Below are positions 23,101 to 51,611 of a DNA stretch of 64,000 nt, piece after piece. Positions within the stretch are counted from its first letter, which is position 1; every line of letters begins with the position of its first letter. Source of the DNA: Trichosphaerium sp. ATCC 40318 (taxonomy: Eukaryota; Protista; Tubulinea); contig JALMLS010000471.1 in assembly GCA_038496445.1 (NCBI GenBank), positions 124,001-188,000 on the forward strand, read 5' to 3'. The position numbers and the translations under genes were made by a program. Under the pieces are notes generated by a model that had not been told where the DNA came from, did not search any database, and saw only the letters and a program-made list of their open reading frames with translations.

Positions 23101-25594
23101 ACCATCTCGCATGTCTTGAATGAACACGTAACTTTTTTTTTTGGTTTCTTTTTTTTTTTGGAAAAGAAAAAATTATACGACGGCTTTTTCACGTTACTGT
23201 TTCTTTCTTTTTCTTTTGCTGTTACTTGAACTTCATAACCAGTATGGTCTTATTGTGGACTAACCTTTATCTACACAAACGTTATGACCTGCAAGTATAC
23301 TAACTATGAATAGGTTGTTGGACATATCTTAGCTTCAGAGAAGAGTAAAGTGCCAATGACTGTCGATATTTACGATTTAAAGGGTAGTGATAAGGATATA
23401 TCCGATGAATCTGTTCCTACTACAGTAGGTGTTACATATTCATCAAAAAAAGGAGATAGCTTCAAATATACATACACATTCTGGGCTTCTCTAAATGATA
23501 AGAAATTGGTTGTTCCAAAGCACAAAACGTTCTTCTTTTATCCAAGAAACACAAGCATTGTCGTTGATAAAGAGTCATGCCCTGAACCTCTTACACCTAC
23601 TGAAGCACGTCCTGGTCTTTATCTAACTGGTAAGATCATACCAGCGCTCAAGGACGTTAAGATCGATACATTCATATCTGATACTGAAGATCGTATTGCT
23701 GATACTGTAACAAGTGGTGAAGACGGTAAATATACTGTTGGACCTTTGTATGATGATAAAGAGTATACTGTTATTGCAACAAAGCCTGGGTACGACTTGA
23801 AACTCGACAAGAACAGGAACTTTATTGCATCCAAGCTAGCAAGTGTTTCCGTCAAGGTAAGTCATAAACTTCTTCACTTTTTTTTTATTTAACTTTCGAA
23901 GTCATTGTCCTCGTTGTGCTTATGTTTGTTTTCTTTAGATTACAGAGGGTTCAGAACCTCTTGTAGGTGTATTAGTTTCTCTGAGTAGTGAGGATTACAG
24001 TAAGAATAGTAAAACTGATGAAACAGGAACAGCATTTTTTGGTGATCTTGTTCCTAATGATTATTACATTGCACCTGTATTGAAGGAGTATTTATTCACT
24101 CCTAAAGGAAAGGTACGTAATTTCTTTCATGTTCCATGGGTTTCAGAAGTAAACCTGCGGCATAAAGAATGGTGTCTTGTTTCGTTCATTTTTTTTTTCA
24201 ATACCAAATACTTCATTTTCTTCTCGCTTATGTGATGTAGTCTGTTGATATTCAAGCTGGTCAAGATAGTGTAACAACTTTATCTGCTGAGCGTGTTGCA
24301 TACAGTTGCTTTGGAAAGATCAGATCTTTGAATGGTGCAGCTGAGAAACGTGTACGGAATGAAACAAAAAAACTTGGATGGTAACTGTTTTGCTGATTTT
24401 TCTTGTTCTTTTTTAGGTTGTTGTTGCTGCTATTGGAACAAGCGATACTTCACTCTATGAAGAGACAGTCACTGACAATAACGGAACATATCGTATCCGT
24501 GGTTTGATGCCTGGTGAAACATACGATATACAGATTTCTCCTTCTGTTAAACAAGTAGGTCTTTTTCTCTTTTTTTCTTTTTTTCTATTCAAGTTTTTCT
24601 TCGATGAGTCTGTCATTTCGTGTTTAATGGTAATCCTTTTTTAGATTGAAAGAGCACAACCTAGTAAAAAAGAGGTTGTTGTATCAAAGGAGGATATAAT
24701 GGATGTAGATTTTATTGCTTTTAGAAGAGTTAATAAGTATGATATCTCAGGACGTGTTTTCTTGAAGAATTATACTGCACGTCGAAGAAAAGATAATATT
24801 TGGGGTCAAGGTGAACATCTAGATTCTATCAAAGTAGAGCTCTATAATAAAGATCAACAAGAGACTGTTGCTACTATTGATTTGGGACCATCAAACTACT
24901 TTCAGTTCACGTACGCCTATAGTGTTTTATGTTTTGATTTTTTTTCTTCCTCCAAGAAGTCTTCGTTTTTCAATTCTTTCTAAAGCTTGCTTTCACCTAC
25001 AATGCCATGTAAACATCTGGTAATGAGAATAATTTTTATGAAACTTTGAATTTTATCTAACCAAATCACGTGTCAAGAAAAATATCGCCGTGAAAAGCCA
25101 AGCCGGACTTTTTTTTTTTTTTTTTTACCTTCTTTTGTTCTTCTCTTATAATTTCTGTTGTAGTGCGCTTTCACCAAAAAAATATATTGTTCGTGTGACT
25201 TCATCATTATCAAAAATGCTTTATAATCACAGCAGTGTTGATATCCAAATTGATGATCCAGAATGGCCAAGAACACATAATGATATCAACTTTTGGCTTG
25301 AACCTGTTGATACAGACCAAGAAATACCAACACAATCTTTATTTGGTGTTGTGTTTATTACATTCATCGGATTAGCATTCCTATCAGGACTCAATTTTTC
25401 AAAGGTAACCTCCAAAGCCCTAATTGGTCTTTTTTTTTTTTCCTTCATTCACTTTCTGTTTTTTTTCTTACAAACTTTCTCATCTTTAGGCTGCATCTAT
25501 TCTTGGTAGTGGATTATGGCCAATATGGGGACAAGTAATGCGTTTATACAGGAATATTACAGGACAAAGAAGAAGGAGAAAAGGAAGGAGATAA
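20118..25594 (+). CDS. NOMO: Nodal modulator (NOMO) ER membrane protein, many exons
   Basis: Signal peptide; 'KYSTECAPNGYYIIPVYDSGDY', 'SGSDGTFSFESVPCGSYSIIPYY', 'DPHGYYCF', 'WCWKKEQI', 'GKYTVGPLYDDKEY'; C-terminal TM and basic tail 'QRRRRKGRR'. Confidence 0.93.
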
Positions 25595-38319: not shown

Positions 38320-38558
38320 GGGCTATAGTTTTGTCCGAATTTTCCGAAAACAAAAATTCGAAAGTGTAGAAAGATGCAGTCCACTAAACTAGAAAGCGCC
38401 TGGTTCACTTACGGTCGGGTCCTCGCTGTGCTCGGAACTAGAACCCCACCTTCGCTCACATATAGTGATCCATTGGTGGGTATAGGCATTCGGTTTTTGT
38501 ATCGAATTCTATTTTTTCGAATTTTCTCTTTCGAAAAATTCGGAAAAACGTGGGTACG
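38320..38558. mobile_element. MITE-like element, about 239 bp
   Basis: TTCTTCAG direct repeat at 38312-38319 and 38559-38566; subterminal inverted repeats 'GTTTTGTCCGAATTTTCCGAAAACAAAAATTCGAAA' and 'TTTCGAATTTTCTCTTTCGAAAAATTCGGAAAAAC'. Confidence 0.7.
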
Positions 38559-38682
38559 TTCTTCAGTCACCTTCAATAGTATTCGTAACGAAACACTCGT
38601 AATTGATTATAATCTTATCATACTTTATTACCGTATCGACAAAATACTCTACAACGGTTTAATACTCAATGTACATAAAAAT

Positions 38683-39708
38683 ATGAACTCAAATAGCTCA
38701 TTCTTTGATGAGATACCCATTGAAGTAGTAGTTAACATTCTACAATTTGTTTCCGAGCTTTCTATTCATTCATTTGTCTGTACATCATATTTACTATTCG
38801 ATATAGCAACACAACACTTGGGATACGTAAATAAGATTGTACTAGAAAAGAGAAAACAGCTGAAAAAAATATTCAACAAGTTCCATCATTTAATCAAGAC
38901 AGCAACAATTCATATTCAGTTTCGTCTCAAACAAAGTGACTTAAAGTACCTCAATGGCGCTTATGCTCTCCAACTCAGAAATGTTAAGAAGAATATTGAT
39001 TTCACAAACTTTAAAGTTATTAATGGTATTACCTTTACGCCTAGTAATGGTAGTAATGGTGATATAAATGATGATCATCTGTTGCAACTTGCTGGAATAC
39101 ATAAAATAGGATTGTCTTTTTCTTTTGTAACAGATTATGGTATTAAAGCATTATCTGGGGTTCATACAATTGATTTAACCGGTTGTGACATAACAGATGA
39201 TGGTGTTAAAGCATTAGCTGGAGTTCATACAATTCATTTATGCAGTTGTCAATACATTACAGATGATGGTGTTAAATCATTGGCTGGAGTTCATACAATT
39301 GGTTTAGCTTGCTGTAAGATTACAGATGATGGAATTAAGGCATTGGCTGGTGTGTATGAGATTGATTTAACCTGGTGTTTACAAATTACAGATGATGGTG
39401 TTAAAGCATTGGCTGGAGTTCATACAATTGATTTAAGTGGCTGTACTCAGATTACAGACAATGGGTTCAAAGCATTGGCTGGAGTTCACACAATTAATTT
39501 AAGCAGTTGTGATGACCTTACAGATGATGGTGTTAAATCATTGGCTGGAGTTCATACAATTGGTTTAGCTTGCTGTAAGATTACAGATGACGGAATTAAG
39601 GCATTGGTTGGTGTTCACTCAATTGATGTAAGTTATTGCCCTCTTGTTACACAAGCTGGTCTCAAAGTACTAGCTGGCACAAAATACATTCGTAACAGCC
39701 ATTCTTGA
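38683..39708 (+). CDS. Intact intronless F-box/LRR protein
   Basis: 'FDEIPIEVVVNILQFV' F-box; about 9 LRRs 'LAGVHTIDLSGCTQITDNGFKA'; likely ATG at 38683. Confidence 0.88.
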   Translation: MNSNSSFFDEIPIEVVVNILQFVSELSIHSFVCTSYLLFDIATQHLGYVNKIVLEKRKQLKKIFNKFHHLIKTATIHIQFRLKQSDLKYLNGAYALQLRNVKKNIDFTNFKVINGITFTPSNGSNGDINDDHLLQLAGIHKIGLSFSFVTDYGIKALSGVHTIDLTGCDITDDGVKALAGVHTIHLCSCQYITDDGVKSLAGVHTIGLACCKITDDGIKALAGVYEIDLTWCLQITDDGVKALAGVHTIDLSGCTQITDNGFKALAGVHTINLSSCDDLTDDGVKSLAGVHTIGLACCKITDDGIKALVGVHSIDVSYCPLVTQAGLKVLAGTKYIRNSHS

Positions 39709-43873: not shown

Positions 43874-43981
43874 ACCCATATCAATCCTCTATCCAAGGTT
43901 GATAGTCAAGTTCGTTCTGACCAAACGTCTGAAATGTCTTCATGTTCAGTCATAAATGATAGGGACACTCGCTCAATATTC

Positions 43982-44760
43982 TTTTTTTTTTTTTTTGAGG
44001 TAAAGCTGGTTTATTAATAAAACCTCAGAATGCATTGGTAGGACCAACAGCAACTAGCGGTGCTTGTACATTTTTACAATATTATACTTTTTTTTTCAGG
44101 TTTTTAGTTTTTCGTGTTCGTGCACTACTCCACATACGAGCTGAGCCATACTGATCGGTTTCTTGTACGGACTGGTGTGGATGGTGCCAACCTTGCCTCA
44201 GGCACTGGTGTGCCATCAAGAAGGATGTGAGAGATCTCGTGACCCACTGCGAACGCCCCGTCGTTGTATTGAAGGCGCTAAAGAAGAGCTGACGGATTTT
44301 TGTATGCTCAAAAGGCGTGAAGTCGTGACTGTAATTGGGATCAAACACCCAATATTCTATGTTATCGTTATAAACCGCCCAAGGCGGTGACTTAATGCTG
44401 TCATTGATATTGACTGCCAGCAAATAATATTTCTTGAACCTAAACCGGACTTCCTTTGAAGTCAAGGGTGTACCATCATACTTGATATCATTACGTACCT
44501 TCCATATAATGGACATGATGATTGATATAGCCAGTAGCGCTGATACATCTCTGTCAAAGCTAAAGAGAGTATCCAGGCCCCACGTACCATCTAACAAAAC
44601 TAAGTAAGGTCCTCCAGCAGTGTGGCAATCGCTTGTGCTGGTTTCCACTCCCAAAATATAACCTCATGTTTTTCATAAGGCCTAGCCATGATCCTGTGAG
44701 TAACAGAGCACCCGCATAAGGTAACGCCATAAATTATCTCTGGGATGATTGCACCCTTTG
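43982..44760 (-). mobile_element. 3' fragment of an L1/Tx1-like non-LTR retrotransposon with poly(A) tail
   Basis: ORF 44082..44654 has 'SIIWKVRNDIKYD' (IWKxRN motif of L1-type ORF2 C-termini); minus-strand AATAAA near 44010 then A15 (43982-43996); 5' boundary approximate and no TSD found. Confidence 0.7.
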
Positions 44761-47105: not shown

Positions 47106-48653
47106 CAAAGTTGGTGTACGCAATATTAGCCTAACAGTTACTGAACTTAACTGGTAGAATGTGCAGTCGATTGTAGTATATTCGCAATACCCATAATTCT
47201 TCATGGAGGAGGCTACCAGCAGCTTTATTGCCAGTAACAAAGATAGACCTGTTTCAATAAAAGTAAATAAATAGCGAATAATATTCGCTAACCAAAAAGA
47301 ATATCTATGAAACTTAAAACCGTACAATACAAAGACACATGTTAATATCAAACAGTTTATACAACATAAATACTTACATGGAAAAAGGAGGATCACGGAG
47401 GGGTAGTGTACACAAGTGCCACAAATTATTATCTTCTTTTCAAGAAAAATACAAAATGGGTCCAAAAGACGCTAGCGTGCGTTCCAATCATCAAAGGGTT
47501 CATAAACCTACCTAATAAAGTACAGTACTACTGGTACATAAATGCACACTATCTCAAAAGTGTAAGAATTTCCGGTTAACAGAGAAACACAGAACGTAAA
47601 AAAAATTTGTTTCTTCACACGTGGTACGAAAAGCTATGTGTCTACTGACAAGTTTTTGGAGGAAGTACCTTTTATTTTTCCTTTAAAACCGACACCCATG
47701 TTGTTAAATACTTCGTTATAGACTAGCTGTGGATATATAAATAGAAGAGTGTCGTTGCGTTGATCACGCGATATCATTCCACATAAGCACAAAAAAAAAG
47801 AACGGGCATCATTAATGCGTATACTACGCACGTGGGTAAGTATTGAGCTTATTTTAGTTTTGTTTAAGAACGAGCCGTCTTTTTTTTTGTGTTTCCACTA
47901 CAGTGTGCACGTGAATGTACCATAAAGAACCAAAAACCGTCATAAAACAACATTTTTAGTATTTTTATGTTTTTCATAGCATTGGACTTCTATAGTGCCG
48001 TCTTTTTACCCGATCTGTAAACTTCGAAGCAATTGTATGTTGACGCTTTGACAATTCTACTTGGCTTAAACAGTGAAAAAGAGAACTCTTGAACTTCGTG
48101 TCTAAGTTGTTCATACATGCTTTTCCCTATCACCCTGATATACACGGTTACACAATAATAGCTACAAGTTCTTTGCTTTCGTCATCAGTGTTCAGAACTA
48201 ACAACGCACAGTGCTTGCAATATCAGGTATTGTCGGAAAAACAGAAGTTAAAAGAAATTCCATAGTGAATTGATTTTGGAAACATTTTAAAGCAACGCAC
48301 ATTTCTTTGTATACTGTAACAAGATACGTTTAAAACAAAAACAATTTTGTACGCTATTATTAAAGCATTTTGATTCGACACTGCCACAACGCAGCACCTT
48401 TATTACCATCTTTATTACAATACAAAATACAAAAAAATCACCATCTCCGAAATCAAGGTTAAAAAGAGGACACTGTTCCATCTGCATCAAAAGCTCACCT
48501 CCATAGAATGGATAATCAGCACATTGCAGCCATACCGGATCGCCACCAAGGATTTTCGTATCCTACGCTATCCTGTACTATTTTAACTTCGGTCAAGAAC
48601 TCGCAAAGTCCAGAGAAGTCACCAAGTTTTTTGTAAATCTTTGTATTGAGTCT

Positions 48654-51002
48654 ATGAATTGCGGTTATCACATACCCAATACTAACATAAAGATACCCAT
48701 CATAGCATATGCAGATGATATAAAGTTAATAGCAAACTCATACAAAGACTTGATAAAGATGTTCAATAAACTCCAAGAATGGTGTAGATTTTACGGTATG
48801 AAAATTAATGAGAAAAAATCTGCATTTTCCTACGTGTGTAGATCTGACCCGTCAGCTCTCTTTCCCCCTCCCAAAGCAAACAATAAACACATATCATTCC
48901 TAAAACCAGAGGAGTCATATAAAGACTTAGGGATTTTAATTAACCTAAGACTAGACAATACAGATCAAACAACAGAAATCAAAAGAAGACATGCCAATGG
49001 TCTATCTTTGATCCGTTTCAAAGGTTTCAACGCAACTCAAAAAACTACAATAATCAACCGCGTTATTAACCCAGGTATATCATTCGTAACTAACGCAATG
49101 TTCATTAACCCATCAGTCCTAAAAAAATGTGATAATAATGCTGCAGACCTTCTAAGATCAGATGCAAAAATACCTTGGAAACTTAAACCAGAGAGAATCT
49201 TTTTGAAACATACCGGTCTCGGCCTGGAACCATTAGTTGACTTACAAAATGCAGGTTTTATCAGCAATTTGATCTCTAACGGCATGAATAGTACAAACAA
49301 CTTAGCTAAACAAATCACAAATGCAAGCATACGCTTAGCCCATCAAAAATTCCACCCAAATCATATGATATGCCAAGCCACACAAATTTGTAAACAGCTA
49401 GGAATAAAAATCATACATAAATCTGATCGTTCAATTCATAGAACAGAACACACAATTAACAGAATGGATAAGCAGACTTTTGAATCAAACTGTAACAAAG
49501 TACAATCAAAATATGTTTTGGCTACCGACGGTTCAGTAACATCTAAAGGTGCATATTTCTCAGTTGTACTTAACACGATGATGAAATTTAATCGTACAGT
49601 TTTATTTGAACAAACATCTACAAATGCAGAACTGGAAGCAATAGAACTTGCACTCAAATTAGCTCCCTTAGAAGTAGACATCATGATACTAGTAGACTCC
49701 ACATCAGCAATTAATGGCATCGAAAACTGGAAAGACAAACCTATAAATATACAAAGGAAAGTTGATCATGCTCATACACTAAATCGTATTCACCATCAGC
49801 TAAATATGAGAACTGGTTCAACCACATTTGAGTGGATCCCAAGCCATACAAAAACAGATAAACAGAAACGTAACAGACACAACATTGTGCAAAGAATAAA
49901 ACAGATTGAAGAAAAGTACTCCAAAAAAACAGCATCACTTTTTATACATCTAAATGACATAGCGGATAGAATGGCAGGTATATCAAAAACTGCAGTAATT
50001 CCGTCGAAGAATATACCTATAGGAAGTGAAGATTGGGTTATAACAAAACCGACAAAGGCGATACAAGGAAATTTATTCAGAAAATTAAAATCCATTCAAC
50101 ATGAAAAACACGTGTTAAGCTTACAAAACAATGCTTTTGACCACGGAAGGACCAGAAAAAACTTAATACTTTCATTATCATCCTACACACCTATCACACA
50201 CCTTTCAACCCCAATCAAGCTTTGGCTCCTAAAAGTAAGAACTAACACACTACCCCTTAATGAATTTCAACACAAACGCAGTAAGACCAAAGGTCATGTC
50301 CAAGCATATCAACTTTGCAATCAAATTAAATACCCCAATGATTATTGTACTCTATGTAAACAAAAAAACACTCAGTGTACAGAAAATTTTAATCATTTTT
50401 GCACCTGCGAGAACATAAAGTCTAAGATAGATATCAAATACCACACAAATAGAATAATACAAGAATTTCTAGGTAAAAATAAAGATACAAAAGATCCTAT
50501 AACATTATACAACGAACATGCAGGTGGAAACAACTTATTTTGCAAATCTAAGTGGCCAACCAAGAATAAAACTAATCCAACATACGACCAAATAGAACTT
50601 GCGAAACTCGGTAGCTCCATTACAATTAAAACAAAAGATTACAATATCAAACCTTGGTACTTAACCAAAAACAATTCCAACCCCACAAACTTCAGAGGCT
50701 CACAAGGATATGTCACAAAAGAATTCATAAGCGAACTTAAAGAGAAAACTGGTACAAACAAAACTAATTTAATCAACGCCCTAGCTAAACGACTGAACCA
50801 CATGTACATCACTTATCTATATAACAAATACTGTACTAGATGCCTAGAAACCCACACCTTAAAAAAATCAAAAGGTCAACATGTACCGATGCACTACGTA
50901 AGATGGCAAGCCAAAGTCATACGCATGCGTCAATTCCTACCAATCACAAATGCAATACCTCTTTTTCCCAACACAACTAATACTAATACGGTAATCACAT
51001 AG
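48654..51002 (+). CDS. Non-LTR ORF2 C-terminal part: RT (YADD onward), RNase H, zinc knuckle
   Basis: 'IIAYADDIKL', 'GMKINEKKS', 'YKDLGI'; RNase H 'TDGS','AELEAI','VDSTSA','WIPSH','NDIADRMA'; 'CTLC...HFCTC'. Confidence 0.92.
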   Translation: MNCGYHIPNTNIKIPIIAYADDIKLIANSYKDLIKMFNKLQEWCRFYGMKINEKKSAFSYVCRSDPSALFPPPKANNKHISFLKPEESYKDLGILINLRLDNTDQTTEIKRRHANGLSLIRFKGFNATQKTTIINRVINPGISFVTNAMFINPSVLKKCDNNAADLLRSDAKIPWKLKPERIFLKHTGLGLEPLVDLQNAGFISNLISNGMNSTNNLAKQITNASIRLAHQKFHPNHMICQATQICKQLGIKIIHKSDRSIHRTEHTINRMDKQTFESNCNKVQSKYVLATDGSVTSKGAYFSVVLNTMMKFNRTVLFEQTSTNAELEAIELALKLAPLEVDIMILVDSTSAINGIENWKDKPINIQRKVDHAHTLNRIHHQLNMRTGSTTFEWIPSHTKTDKQKRNRHNIVQRIKQIEEKYSKKTASLFIHLNDIADRMAGISKTAVIPSKNIPIGSEDWVITKPTKAIQGNLFRKLKSIQHEKHVLSLQNNAFDHGRTRKNLILSLSSYTPITHLSTPIKLWLLKVRTNTLPLNEFQHKRSKTKGHVQAYQLCNQIKYPNDYCTLCKQKNTQCTENFNHFCTCENIKSKIDIKYHTNRIIQEFLGKNKDTKDPITLYNEHAGGNNLFCKSKWPTKNKTNPTYDQIELAKLGSSITIKTKDYNIKPWYLTKNNSNPTNFRGSQGYVTKEFISELKEKTGTNKTNLINALAKRLNHMYITYLYNKYCTRCLETHTLKKSKGQHVPMHYVRWQAKVIRMRQFLPITNAIPLFPNTTNTNTVIT

Positions 51003-51013
51003 CATTTGTTATA

Positions 51014-51070
51014 ACAGCCAACCCAAACGCTTCGGCGTAGCCCTTTGGAGGCTAGAGGTGGGTTGGCTGT
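51014..51070 (+). other. Structured 3' UTR of the LINE (three-way junction)
   Basis: 12-bp stem ACAGCCAACCCA/TGGGTTGGCTGT encloses CGC-TTCG-GCG and TAGCC-CTTTGGA-GGCTA hairpins. Confidence 0.8.
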
Positions 51071-51611
51071 ATAAAGATCGTTATTGACTTTTTTTTTTTT
51101 TTTTTTTTTTTTTTGTAAATCTTTGTCGATTCTCTTATGCCCATTCTAAGGTTGGTCCTGTTGGGTGTTTCAACGCATTTGCATACCAAATTAACGCCCG
51201 GTTGAAGGATTACAGCGTTTTCTCCTTCATCAGCTAAACAGCTATCCTCGTCATAAAAAGGTAGAGCCAGCGTCACTGTATATCTATTGCGCACGTGCGT
51301 AGCTGTTTTCGTTATTTGAGTTCATTTTAAAAATAAAACCTTCTCTCTTATTAATCAATCACTAAACGCACAGTGCGCACGTGAGTGTATCTTGAAAAAG
51401 CAAAAACTTGAAAGCGTTGAAAAGTTTTATCATTGTTGGCGTAGACTGCCAAAGTTTGCTACGTTACGATATTCTTTCTGACATCCTACGTTCTAACCGC
51501 GAAGCATGGTAGACAGCAGAAAAGACAATGGCTTACACGGTCAGCTACAATATTTTATATATGTCGTTTTGTAAAACGAGTAATACAGGAACAGGAACAG
51601 TAAGCAAGTAT

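Follow-up and report, generated by a model that had tools for sequence, protein, structure and literature searches.

A 5′-truncated non-LTR retrotransposon copy with a sense-strand T tail behind a structured 3′ UTR

LINEs that combine an APE-type endonuclease with an RNase H domain include the Tad1, I, Ingi and Nimb clades, whereas the EhLINEs of Entamoeba use a restriction-like endonuclease and have no RNase H. For an Aedes aegypti SINE with 'changing tails', a 2004 Genetics paper by Tu, Li and Mao reportedly connects 3′ tandem repeats with homopolymer tails by way of slippage retrotransposition. For the non-poly(A) tails of LINEs such as the I factor, with (TAA)n, and UnaL2, with (TGTAA)n, template slippage has been described (PMC3747384). 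Recognition of the 3′ tail can be stringent (PMC4176376), and the tail repeats are thought to aid both priming and template slippage (PMC3747384; PMC4176376). T-rich ends have a precedent in Entamoeba, which the original prediction for the present locus named and which is real: the T-rich 3′ tail of EhLINE1/SINE1 has been modelled as bonding to an A-rich bottom strand (PMC1635306), and EhLINE1/EhSINE1 prefer T-rich insertion sites (PMC2996970). Literature searches, within the terms that could be searched, turned up no LINE described as ending in pure poly(T), which does not prove that none exists.

The window (the whole 64,000-nucleotide stretch of Trichosphaerium sp. ATCC 40318 DNA that we analysed) contains an insert of 2.46 kb that displays hallmarks of target-primed reverse transcription (TPRT), namely a target-site duplication (TSD), 5′ truncation and the absence of terminal repeats (Table 1). 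The TSD, TTTTTTGTAAATCTTTGT, is identical over 18 bp in its two copies, with no extension of the match to either side, and starts with TTTTTT as originally predicted; six T at that position have a chance frequency of ~0.005 against the background of this window. The prediction that removing the insert restores a reading frame also held: excision in silico produced a 107-codon open minus-strand frame running through the junction (...RESTKIYKKLGDFSGLCEF...), and only 0.7% of the stop-free runs in the window are as long. Because a Pfam search with this frame returned no match, we regard its status as a coding exon as likely rather than certain.

Table 1. Features of the insert and its target site (positions in the window).
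Feature	Position	Strand	Basis
TSD, 5′ copy, starting with T6	48627..48644	+	identity to 51109-51126
5′-truncated remnant of ORF2, with the C-terminal part of the RT, an RNase H, a CCHC motif and a C-terminal region	48645..51002	+	translation; Pfam RVT_1
YADD box of reverse transcriptase, aa 22-25 of remnant	48708..48719	+	translation; RVT_1 profile match
RNase H domain, aa 271-446	49455..49982	+	relative's Pfam match, alignment, model, Foldseek
Zinc-knuckle-like motif C-X2-C-X12-H-X3-C	50346..50408	+	invariant in family alignment
3′ UTR, 86 nt, structured	51003..51088	+	fold; same architecture in L002
T tail, sense strand, 20 T beyond TSD (26 with the TSD's T6, to 51114)	51089..51108	+	sequence
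TSD, 3′ copy	51109..51126	+	identity to 48627-48644

The insert is open from its very first base to a stop at 51000–51002 (785 codons, or 782 counted from the first ATG at 48654). Because this frame starts at the junction, ~20 codons before the YADD box, the copy is 5′-truncated and dead on arrival: it is cut inside the reverse transcriptase (RT), of which no more than the last third is left, and both the endonuclease and ORF1 are missing. To call the 782-codon ORF intact is misleading, since it is an open frame but not a whole gene; the proposal that the insertion is recent fits both the perfect 18-bp TSD and the 785 codons that are still open.

In the protein, Pfam detected only the C-terminal part of RVT_1 (aa 16–79, E 1e-9, covering profile positions 146–194 of 205), and this match together with the YADD box confirms an RT of the non-LTR type. 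HMMER returned 285 matches to the ORF protein, the best of which were RT–RNase H proteins; an exact-protein look-up found no record. The + strand RT–RNase H ORF of the original prediction is borne out by four lines of evidence for an RNase H that follows the RT: the relative P0002 (46–48% identical) matches Pfam RNase_H at 1.7e-11, the D..E..D..H..D motif residues align with those of relatives, the predicted structure is confident over the domain as delimited in Table 1, and Foldseek gave a probability of 1.00 to the RNases H of E. coli (RNase HI) and HIV, with all of its matches confined to this part of the model. The zinc-knuckle columns (C307, C310, H323 and C327 of family alignment A1) are invariant. 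The C-terminal 340 aa are mostly helical in a model that is too poor here (pLDDT below 50) to judge the presence of a restriction-like endonuclease. RLE-type LINEs (R2, EhLINE and the dual-endonuclease Dualen/RandI) carry such an enzyme, of the PD-(D/E)XK kind, behind the CCHC motif; in this region Pfam gave no match, and inspection by eye showed no PD...D/E.K motif.

The lineage of RT–RNase H–CCHC non-LTR elements to which the copy belongs is small and rarely sampled. Its nearest relative, L002 from a metagenome contig, is 46% identical over 627 aa, and in a tree of very divergent sequences (SH-aLRT supports from a quick search) the window copy was joined first by P0002 (91), then by P0003 (86) and then by L030 (94). 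Two other family members, L003 and L031, are represented by contigs or copies that stop before the 3′ end. The 5′ part of the element is absent from the window copy and from its close relatives (L002, L003, L030 and L031), but the distant full-length relatives P0007, P0011, P0012, P0015 and P0024 carry an Exo_endo_phos domain upstream of the RT, and in P0015 and P0024 the match runs without a break from the RT across RNase H as far as the CCHC motif. Judging from these full-length sequences, the family's endonuclease is probably of the APE type. Within the window, no further family copy was found with a 24-mer allowing 3 mismatches, with tblastn of the ORF or with patterns combining the conserved 3′ UTR box and a T run. 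Elsewhere, a protein word search returned one distant match and, with the family alignment, P0002 alone; a metagenome scan with the protein alignment gave no confirmed match, and no copy was found in genome and viral collections. Scanning the metagenomes with the conserved 3′ UTR pattern produced 23 matches, all of them chance occurrences that have no tail and lie in unrelated DNA, most of which looks bacterial.

The 3′ UTR of the window copy folds into an 11–12-bp closing stem around two small hairpins, one of them with a UUCG loop (MFE −32.6 kcal/mol, z −3.8). Behind this fold, and still within the 3′ UTR, come a conserved CTGTATAAA box and a 13-nt spacer, which lead to the T run. L002 has a 3′ UTR of the same plan (z −3.1), the same box and a 12-nt spacer, after which comes (TTTC)6. 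Between the closing stems of the two, 7 of 10 pairs are unchanged, 3 are compensatory and none is broken; for this comparison each sequence was folded singly and the conserved box served as anchor, because MAFFT/RNAalifold misaligned the stems. An Rfam search with the 3′ UTR gave no match. A conserved stem-loop directly upstream of the tail is characteristic of stringent-type LINEs, and the Drosophila I factor with its (TAA)n, the eel UnaL2 and the zebrafish ZfL2, with tails of the (TGTAA)n type, share with the window element both this arrangement, which here includes compensatory changes between relatives, and a short-repeat tail other than poly(A). The likeness is one of 3′ UTR and kind of tail and may not extend to the clade (I, L2 or other). 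The conservation and folding of the 3′ UTR imply that recognition is specific and not of the tail only, unlike in the relaxed L1 type, and would give this region a role in retrotransposition.

The sense strand ends not in poly(A), or in any A run, but in 26 T (51089–51114), the longest homopolymer of the window. As had been predicted, 20 of these T lie past the TSD; all 26 would do so if the true TSD comprised no more than the 12 bp that follow T6, as the T run leaves the exact boundary ambiguous. In the clade that spans the window copy and L030, all three visible tails are G-less and T-rich (T26 here, (TTTC)6 for L002, (ATCT)n for L030), whereas the more distant relatives outside it end in A-rich runs, poly(A), A13 or (TTAC)n. 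This support from relatives comes from two contigs, L002 and L030, which show no visible 5′ junction or TSD, so that microsatellites at the target are a conceivable source of their repeats. Because L002 has the T-rich (TTTC)6 at the equivalent position after a covarying 3′ UTR, the T run is best read, from sequence comparison, as the element's own tail and not as a post-insertion accident. It differs from the tails of the I factor, UnaL2 and ZfL2 in that its unit is a single T, which makes it a homopolymer and the complement of the poly(A) that is usual, and in that its sister tails are pyrimidine-only or G-less.

We consider it reasonably probable that the insert is a recent, dead-on-arrival copy from a stringent lineage of RT–RNase H–CCHC elements, in which a short spacer of fixed length separates the structured 3′ UTR fold from a tail of pyrimidine-rich simple repeats, here collapsed to T. 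We read the T tail as an uncommon form of an already known type of tail and not as a new mechanism. The tails of the lineage would then form a series: the sister element has (TTTC)n, the next relative (ATCT)n, and the window copy, by collapse, pure T. Repeat-to-homopolymer slippage of the kind that we propose for (TTTC)n versus T(n) is what the Aedes aegypti element is reported to show, but that element is not a LINE and has poly(dA) as its homopolymer. Alternatively, the family may have no T tail and the run may be a one-off, produced when the T6 of the target was lengthened by untemplated addition of A to the primer when TPRT began or by later replication slippage. The run does adjoin the target T6, a single copy was seen, and non-LTR RTs are documented to extend without a template (PMC8857657). 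However, the 5′ copy of the TSD keeps exactly T6, the TSD is perfect over 18 bp, the 785 codons still open leave little time for slippage to gain 20 T, and a T-rich tract occupies the same position in the sister element; we therefore think a one-off unlikely.

If the T run is indeed a collapsed repeat tail, the element's protein would bind the 3′ UTR fold, the bottom strand would be nicked after an A run (5′-...AAAAAA/C), the A-rich 3′-OH would prime reverse transcription by pairing with the RNA's U run, and a second nick 18 bp away would generate the TSD. Tail length would be set by slippage or reiteration on the repeat, and the simpler origin of the tail would be a templated simple repeat, copied or re-extended by the RT. 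The predicted priming by an A-rich 3′-OH agrees with a TSD that starts with T6, as expected for pairing to a U run, and an A-rich nicked strand on a U run is probably the priming geometry. L1-type elements likewise show variable 5′ truncation, a TSD of ~10–20 bp and a homopolymer tail able to pair with the first bases of the TSD complement, but the tail here is T, not A, and the nick would fall behind a run of A, in contrast to the consensus 5′-TTTTT/AA of L1 (PMC8565326). Unlike the EhLINEs, the family studied here possesses RNase H, and an APE domain is present in its full-length relatives; no sequence relationship between the window element and EhLINE1/EhSINE1 was found.

The original prediction tentatively traced the T run to an RNA with an untemplated oligo(U) end, which Pol III-like termination or a terminal uridylyltransferase would have produced, so that TPRT would be a true mirror image of that of L1. 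The purity of the run and the T6 at the start of the TSD speak for this origin, but it is unsupported and in our view improbable, because neither uridylation nor Pol III termination can make the (TTTC)6 and (ATCT)n found at the equivalent position in the sister elements. In addition, the 14 internal runs of at least four T in the 2.4-kb sense strand would stop Pol III, and uridylation is reported to restrict rather than enable human L1 retrotransposition (PMC6191937). Similarly improbable is the bolder form of the idea, in which an APE-type lineage would have inverted the L1 priming code, nicking after A runs and using a genuine 3′-terminal oligo(U) from a non-canonical 3′-end pathway; were it true, host U-tailing, which is restrictive for L1, would license this element.

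Two other explanations place the T run outside the element. Non-LTR elements that target microsatellites reportedly exist (Kojima and Fujiwara 2004, cited in PMC3747384), and a LINE inserting specifically into T or pyrimidine microsatellites would leave a T run that is target DNA; the flank of L002 is indeed seen on one side only. Here, however, the 5′ flank has just the T6 of the TSD, so the same repeat does not occur on both flanks, and the empty-site frame reads AAA AAA as two Lys codons and would be broken by a 26-A run, which makes a microsatellite target very unlikely. We give still less credence to an assembly artefact, whether a misjoin or a wrongly read homopolymer. Homopolymers of 26 bases are prone to errors in length, and the one sequencing run that matches the stretch, a salt-marsh metagenome, covers the insert with a single 193-bp contig (identical to 49609–49801) that lies inside it and contains neither junction nor tail. 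But an error alters the length of a run and not its existence, and a misjoin would not give a perfect TSD, a frame-restoring excision and a coherent element structure.

From the one T-tailed copy examined, T tails may be general among the copies of this family in the genome. In that case, the family would be a case from nature in which TPRT uses a homopolymer tail but swaps the pairing roles, an A-rich primer acting on a U-rich template, in an element that has RNase H and probably an APE endonuclease. The series of T, (TTTC)n and (ATCT)n would also show how a repeat tail becomes a homopolymer tail and how tail, 3′ UTR recognition and nick-site preference co-evolve. Annotation pipelines that seek poly(A) would mis-orient or overlook T-tailed copies. 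Two other T runs in the window, at 25109 and 25430, lie in polypyrimidine tracts of + strand introns and are not element tails.

The LINE insert was bounded by two target-site duplication (TSD) copies whose identity ended at 18 bp on both sides, and its terminal T run was the longest homopolymer anywhere in the 64-kb window. When we rebuilt the empty site by removing the insert and one TSD copy, an open minus-strand frame of 107 codons spanned the junction, and only 0.7% of the stop-free runs in the window were as long. The original prediction had described this structure correctly, in that the 18-bp TSD, the 26 T and the frame-restoring excision were all recovered. An assembly error could have altered the length of the T run, but not this structure. 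The restored frame is likely an exon, short of proof because it had no Pfam match; no paralogue of it was found within the window.

Features of the insertion and of other parts of the window
Feature	Position	Strand	Remark
TSD, 5′ copy	48627-48644	+	18-mer TTTTTTGTAAATCTTTGT, exact repeat of 51109-51126
TSD, 3′ copy	51109-51126	+	18-mer TTTTTTGTAAATCTTTGT, exact repeat of 48627-48644
Insert between TSD copies	48645-51108	+	2,464 bp
Open frame	48645 to stop 51000-51002	+	785 codons from first base of insert
Match to salt-marsh contig	49609-49801		identical over 193 bp
Untranslated stretch after stop	51003-51088	+	86 nt
CTGTATAAA box	51065-51075		L002 equivalent at about 2077-2087
T run	51089-51114	+	26 T, the last six being the start of the 3′ TSD copy
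Host frame split by insert	48519-48644 and 51127-51321	minus	107 codons once restored
Predicted poly(A) LINE	43974-44654	minus	T15 on +, i.e. A15 on minus, with AATAAA upstream on minus
T18 run	25109-25126	+	polypyrimidine tract, 3′ end of short intron, + strand gene
T12 run	25430-25441	+	polypyrimidine tract, 3′ end of short intron, + strand gene
444-aa ORF	38374-39705		resembles F-box/LRR proteins

The insertion is fresh, because its TSD is perfect and its 785 codons are free of stops, and it is also dead. The frame that had been called an intact ORF is not a whole gene: with a YADD box at codons 22-25 and a Pfam RVT_1 match covering only model positions 146-194 out of 205, the copy is truncated inside the reverse transcriptase (RT), with most of that domain, ORF1 and the endonuclease missing. 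Only two family copies had a visible 5′ end (window 48645, and about 3119-3130 of L031, another family member), and both began ~15-20 codons upstream of the RT YADD. This shared start may be due to chance, to a favoured site of truncation or pausing, or to initiation within the element.

Downstream of the RT remnant lies an RNase H domain. The window protein itself received no Pfam call for it, and four lines of evidence support its presence: P0002, the nearest related protein (46-48% identical), matched Pfam RNase_H with an E value of 1.7e-11; the catalytic D, E, D, H and D positions aligned between relatives and the window protein; the AlphaFold model was confident at amino acids 271-446; and over this region it matched RNase HI of E. 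coli and the RNase H domain of HIV at a probability of 1.00. The family alignment revealed an invariant C-X2-C-X12-H-X3-C motif further downstream, followed by a poorly modelled, mostly helical C-terminal region of about 200 amino acids in which we saw no sign of a restriction-like endonuclease, the structure model there being weak. An exhaustive HMMER search returned 285 matches, with E < 1e-30 in only three; the family is rare in public data. The more distant P0015 and P0024 matched unbroken from the RT via RNase H to the CCHC motif. Because the RT is preceded by an Exo_endo_phos (APE) domain in distant relatives (P0007, P0011, P0012, P0015 and P0024), the element is most likely an APE-RT-RNase H LINE.

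We built the case for the T run as a tail on the 3′ ends of relatives, together with the one T-tailed copy. The metagenome contig encoding P0002 (L002) extends beyond the stop codon, and its 3′ UTR folds like that of the window element, with a long closing stem enclosing two small hairpins (fold z-scores of -3.1 and -3.8 for L002 and the window, respectively). Anchoring the comparison on the common CTGTATAAA box left 10 comparable closing-stem pairs, of which 7 were identical, 3 were changed on both sides with pairing kept, and none was broken. From this box, a spacer of 12 nt in L002 and 13 nt in the window leads to the tail, which in L002 is (TTTC)6, at the exact position equivalent to T26. 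The gene directly downstream of that repeat (L002 2168-2278 and onward) has short introns, and its beginning partly matches the fungal Zn(2)-Cys(6) cluster domain (E 0.001); (TTTC)6 therefore adjoins ordinary host DNA, and the host of this sister element is probably a fungus. The box includes TATAAA (UAUAAA in RNA), which resembles a variant polyadenylation hexamer; the T-rich tract would in that case occupy the place of a U-rich downstream element.

The sense tail was (ATCT)n in L030 (29% amino acid identity to the window protein, from the same metagenome as L002). Among loci with about 24-25% identity, it was (TTAC)n in L001, A-rich and (AAAT)-like in L028, A13 in L029, a long poly(A) in L027, and ambiguous in L032. 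When the RNase H-CCHC region was used to build a quick maximum-likelihood tree, the window element grouped with P0002 (SH-aLRT support 91), then P0003 (86), then L030 (94), and the A-tailed elements fell outside this group. All visible tails within the window element's small clade are G-less, T-rich simple repeats, which is the main argument that T26, seen in a single copy, would be the element's own tail rather than an accident. Three observations speak against a one-off lengthening of the target T6 by untemplated addition or slippage: T6 is unchanged in the 5′ TSD copy, the insert is young, and the sister element has its tail in the same position. A preference of the element for T or pyrimidine microsatellites as targets is at odds with a 5′ flank of only T6 and with an empty site that restores an open frame.

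Repeat tails other than poly(A) are established, as is recognition that depends on the 3′ UTR. In stringent LINEs the element's own 3′ tail RNA is recognised by the ORF2 protein (PMC4176376), and template slippage at initiation has been tied to terminal repeats, for example (TAA)n in I and (TGTAA)n in UnaL2 (PMC3747384). Like stringent LINEs, the window element has a conserved, covarying 3′ UTR directly upstream of a short-repeat tail, and its family may combine stringent-type recognition of the 3′ RNA with slippage, the repeat unit being reduced to U. The bottom strand of the target, 5′-ACAAAGATTTACAAAAAA/CTTGG, would be nicked after A6, leaving an A-rich 3′-OH that would pair with the U run of the element RNA; extension from this primer would yield the observed order of T tail, then TSD beginning with T6. 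Because T6 occurs at any given position in the window with a frequency of about 0.005, its place at the start of the TSD is suggestive of A-rich priming, for a single case. The boundary between tail and TSD is ambiguous, as a nick on the other side of A6 would give a 12-bp TSD and a 26-T tail. The Pol III-like termination or uridylation originally proposed found no support: neither could have made the sister elements' (TTTC)n and (ATCT)n tails, and the sense strand of the insert contains 14 runs of at least four T.

For Entamoeba EhLINE1/SINE1, which also favour T-rich sites (PMC2996970), it has been proposed that a T-rich LINE tail bonds to the A-rich bottom strand (PMC1635306). No LINE described as ending in poly(T) alone turned up in our literature search, whose terms were limited. 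The unusual points here are that an RNase H-bearing, probably APE-type element ends in a homopolymer of T and that its close relatives use other pyrimidine-rich units.

Two other long T runs in the window lie in intron polypyrimidine tracts; introns in this genome thus have long sense T runs as an ordinary component, and such runs are not to be confused with element tails. At the second LINE that had been predicted, at 43982, the A15 follows AATAAA on the minus strand, and the adjacent 190-aa minus-strand ORF had no Pfam match and only a weak Atlas lead, at 0.87, to RNase H-like/zf-RVT proteins. Judging by short repeats of the CAATATT type, found at 43974 and again at 44077, the retro-insert there might be only about 100 bp long. 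The window's 444-aa ORF resembles proteins common in giant-virus records.

No further family copies were found in the 64-kb window or recovered from the protein, metagenome, genome and viral collections searched. Among sequencing runs, only one held part of the stretch, as a single mid-ORF contig of 193 bp in a salt-marsh metagenome, and the organism, or the element, therefore occurs in salt-marsh habitat.
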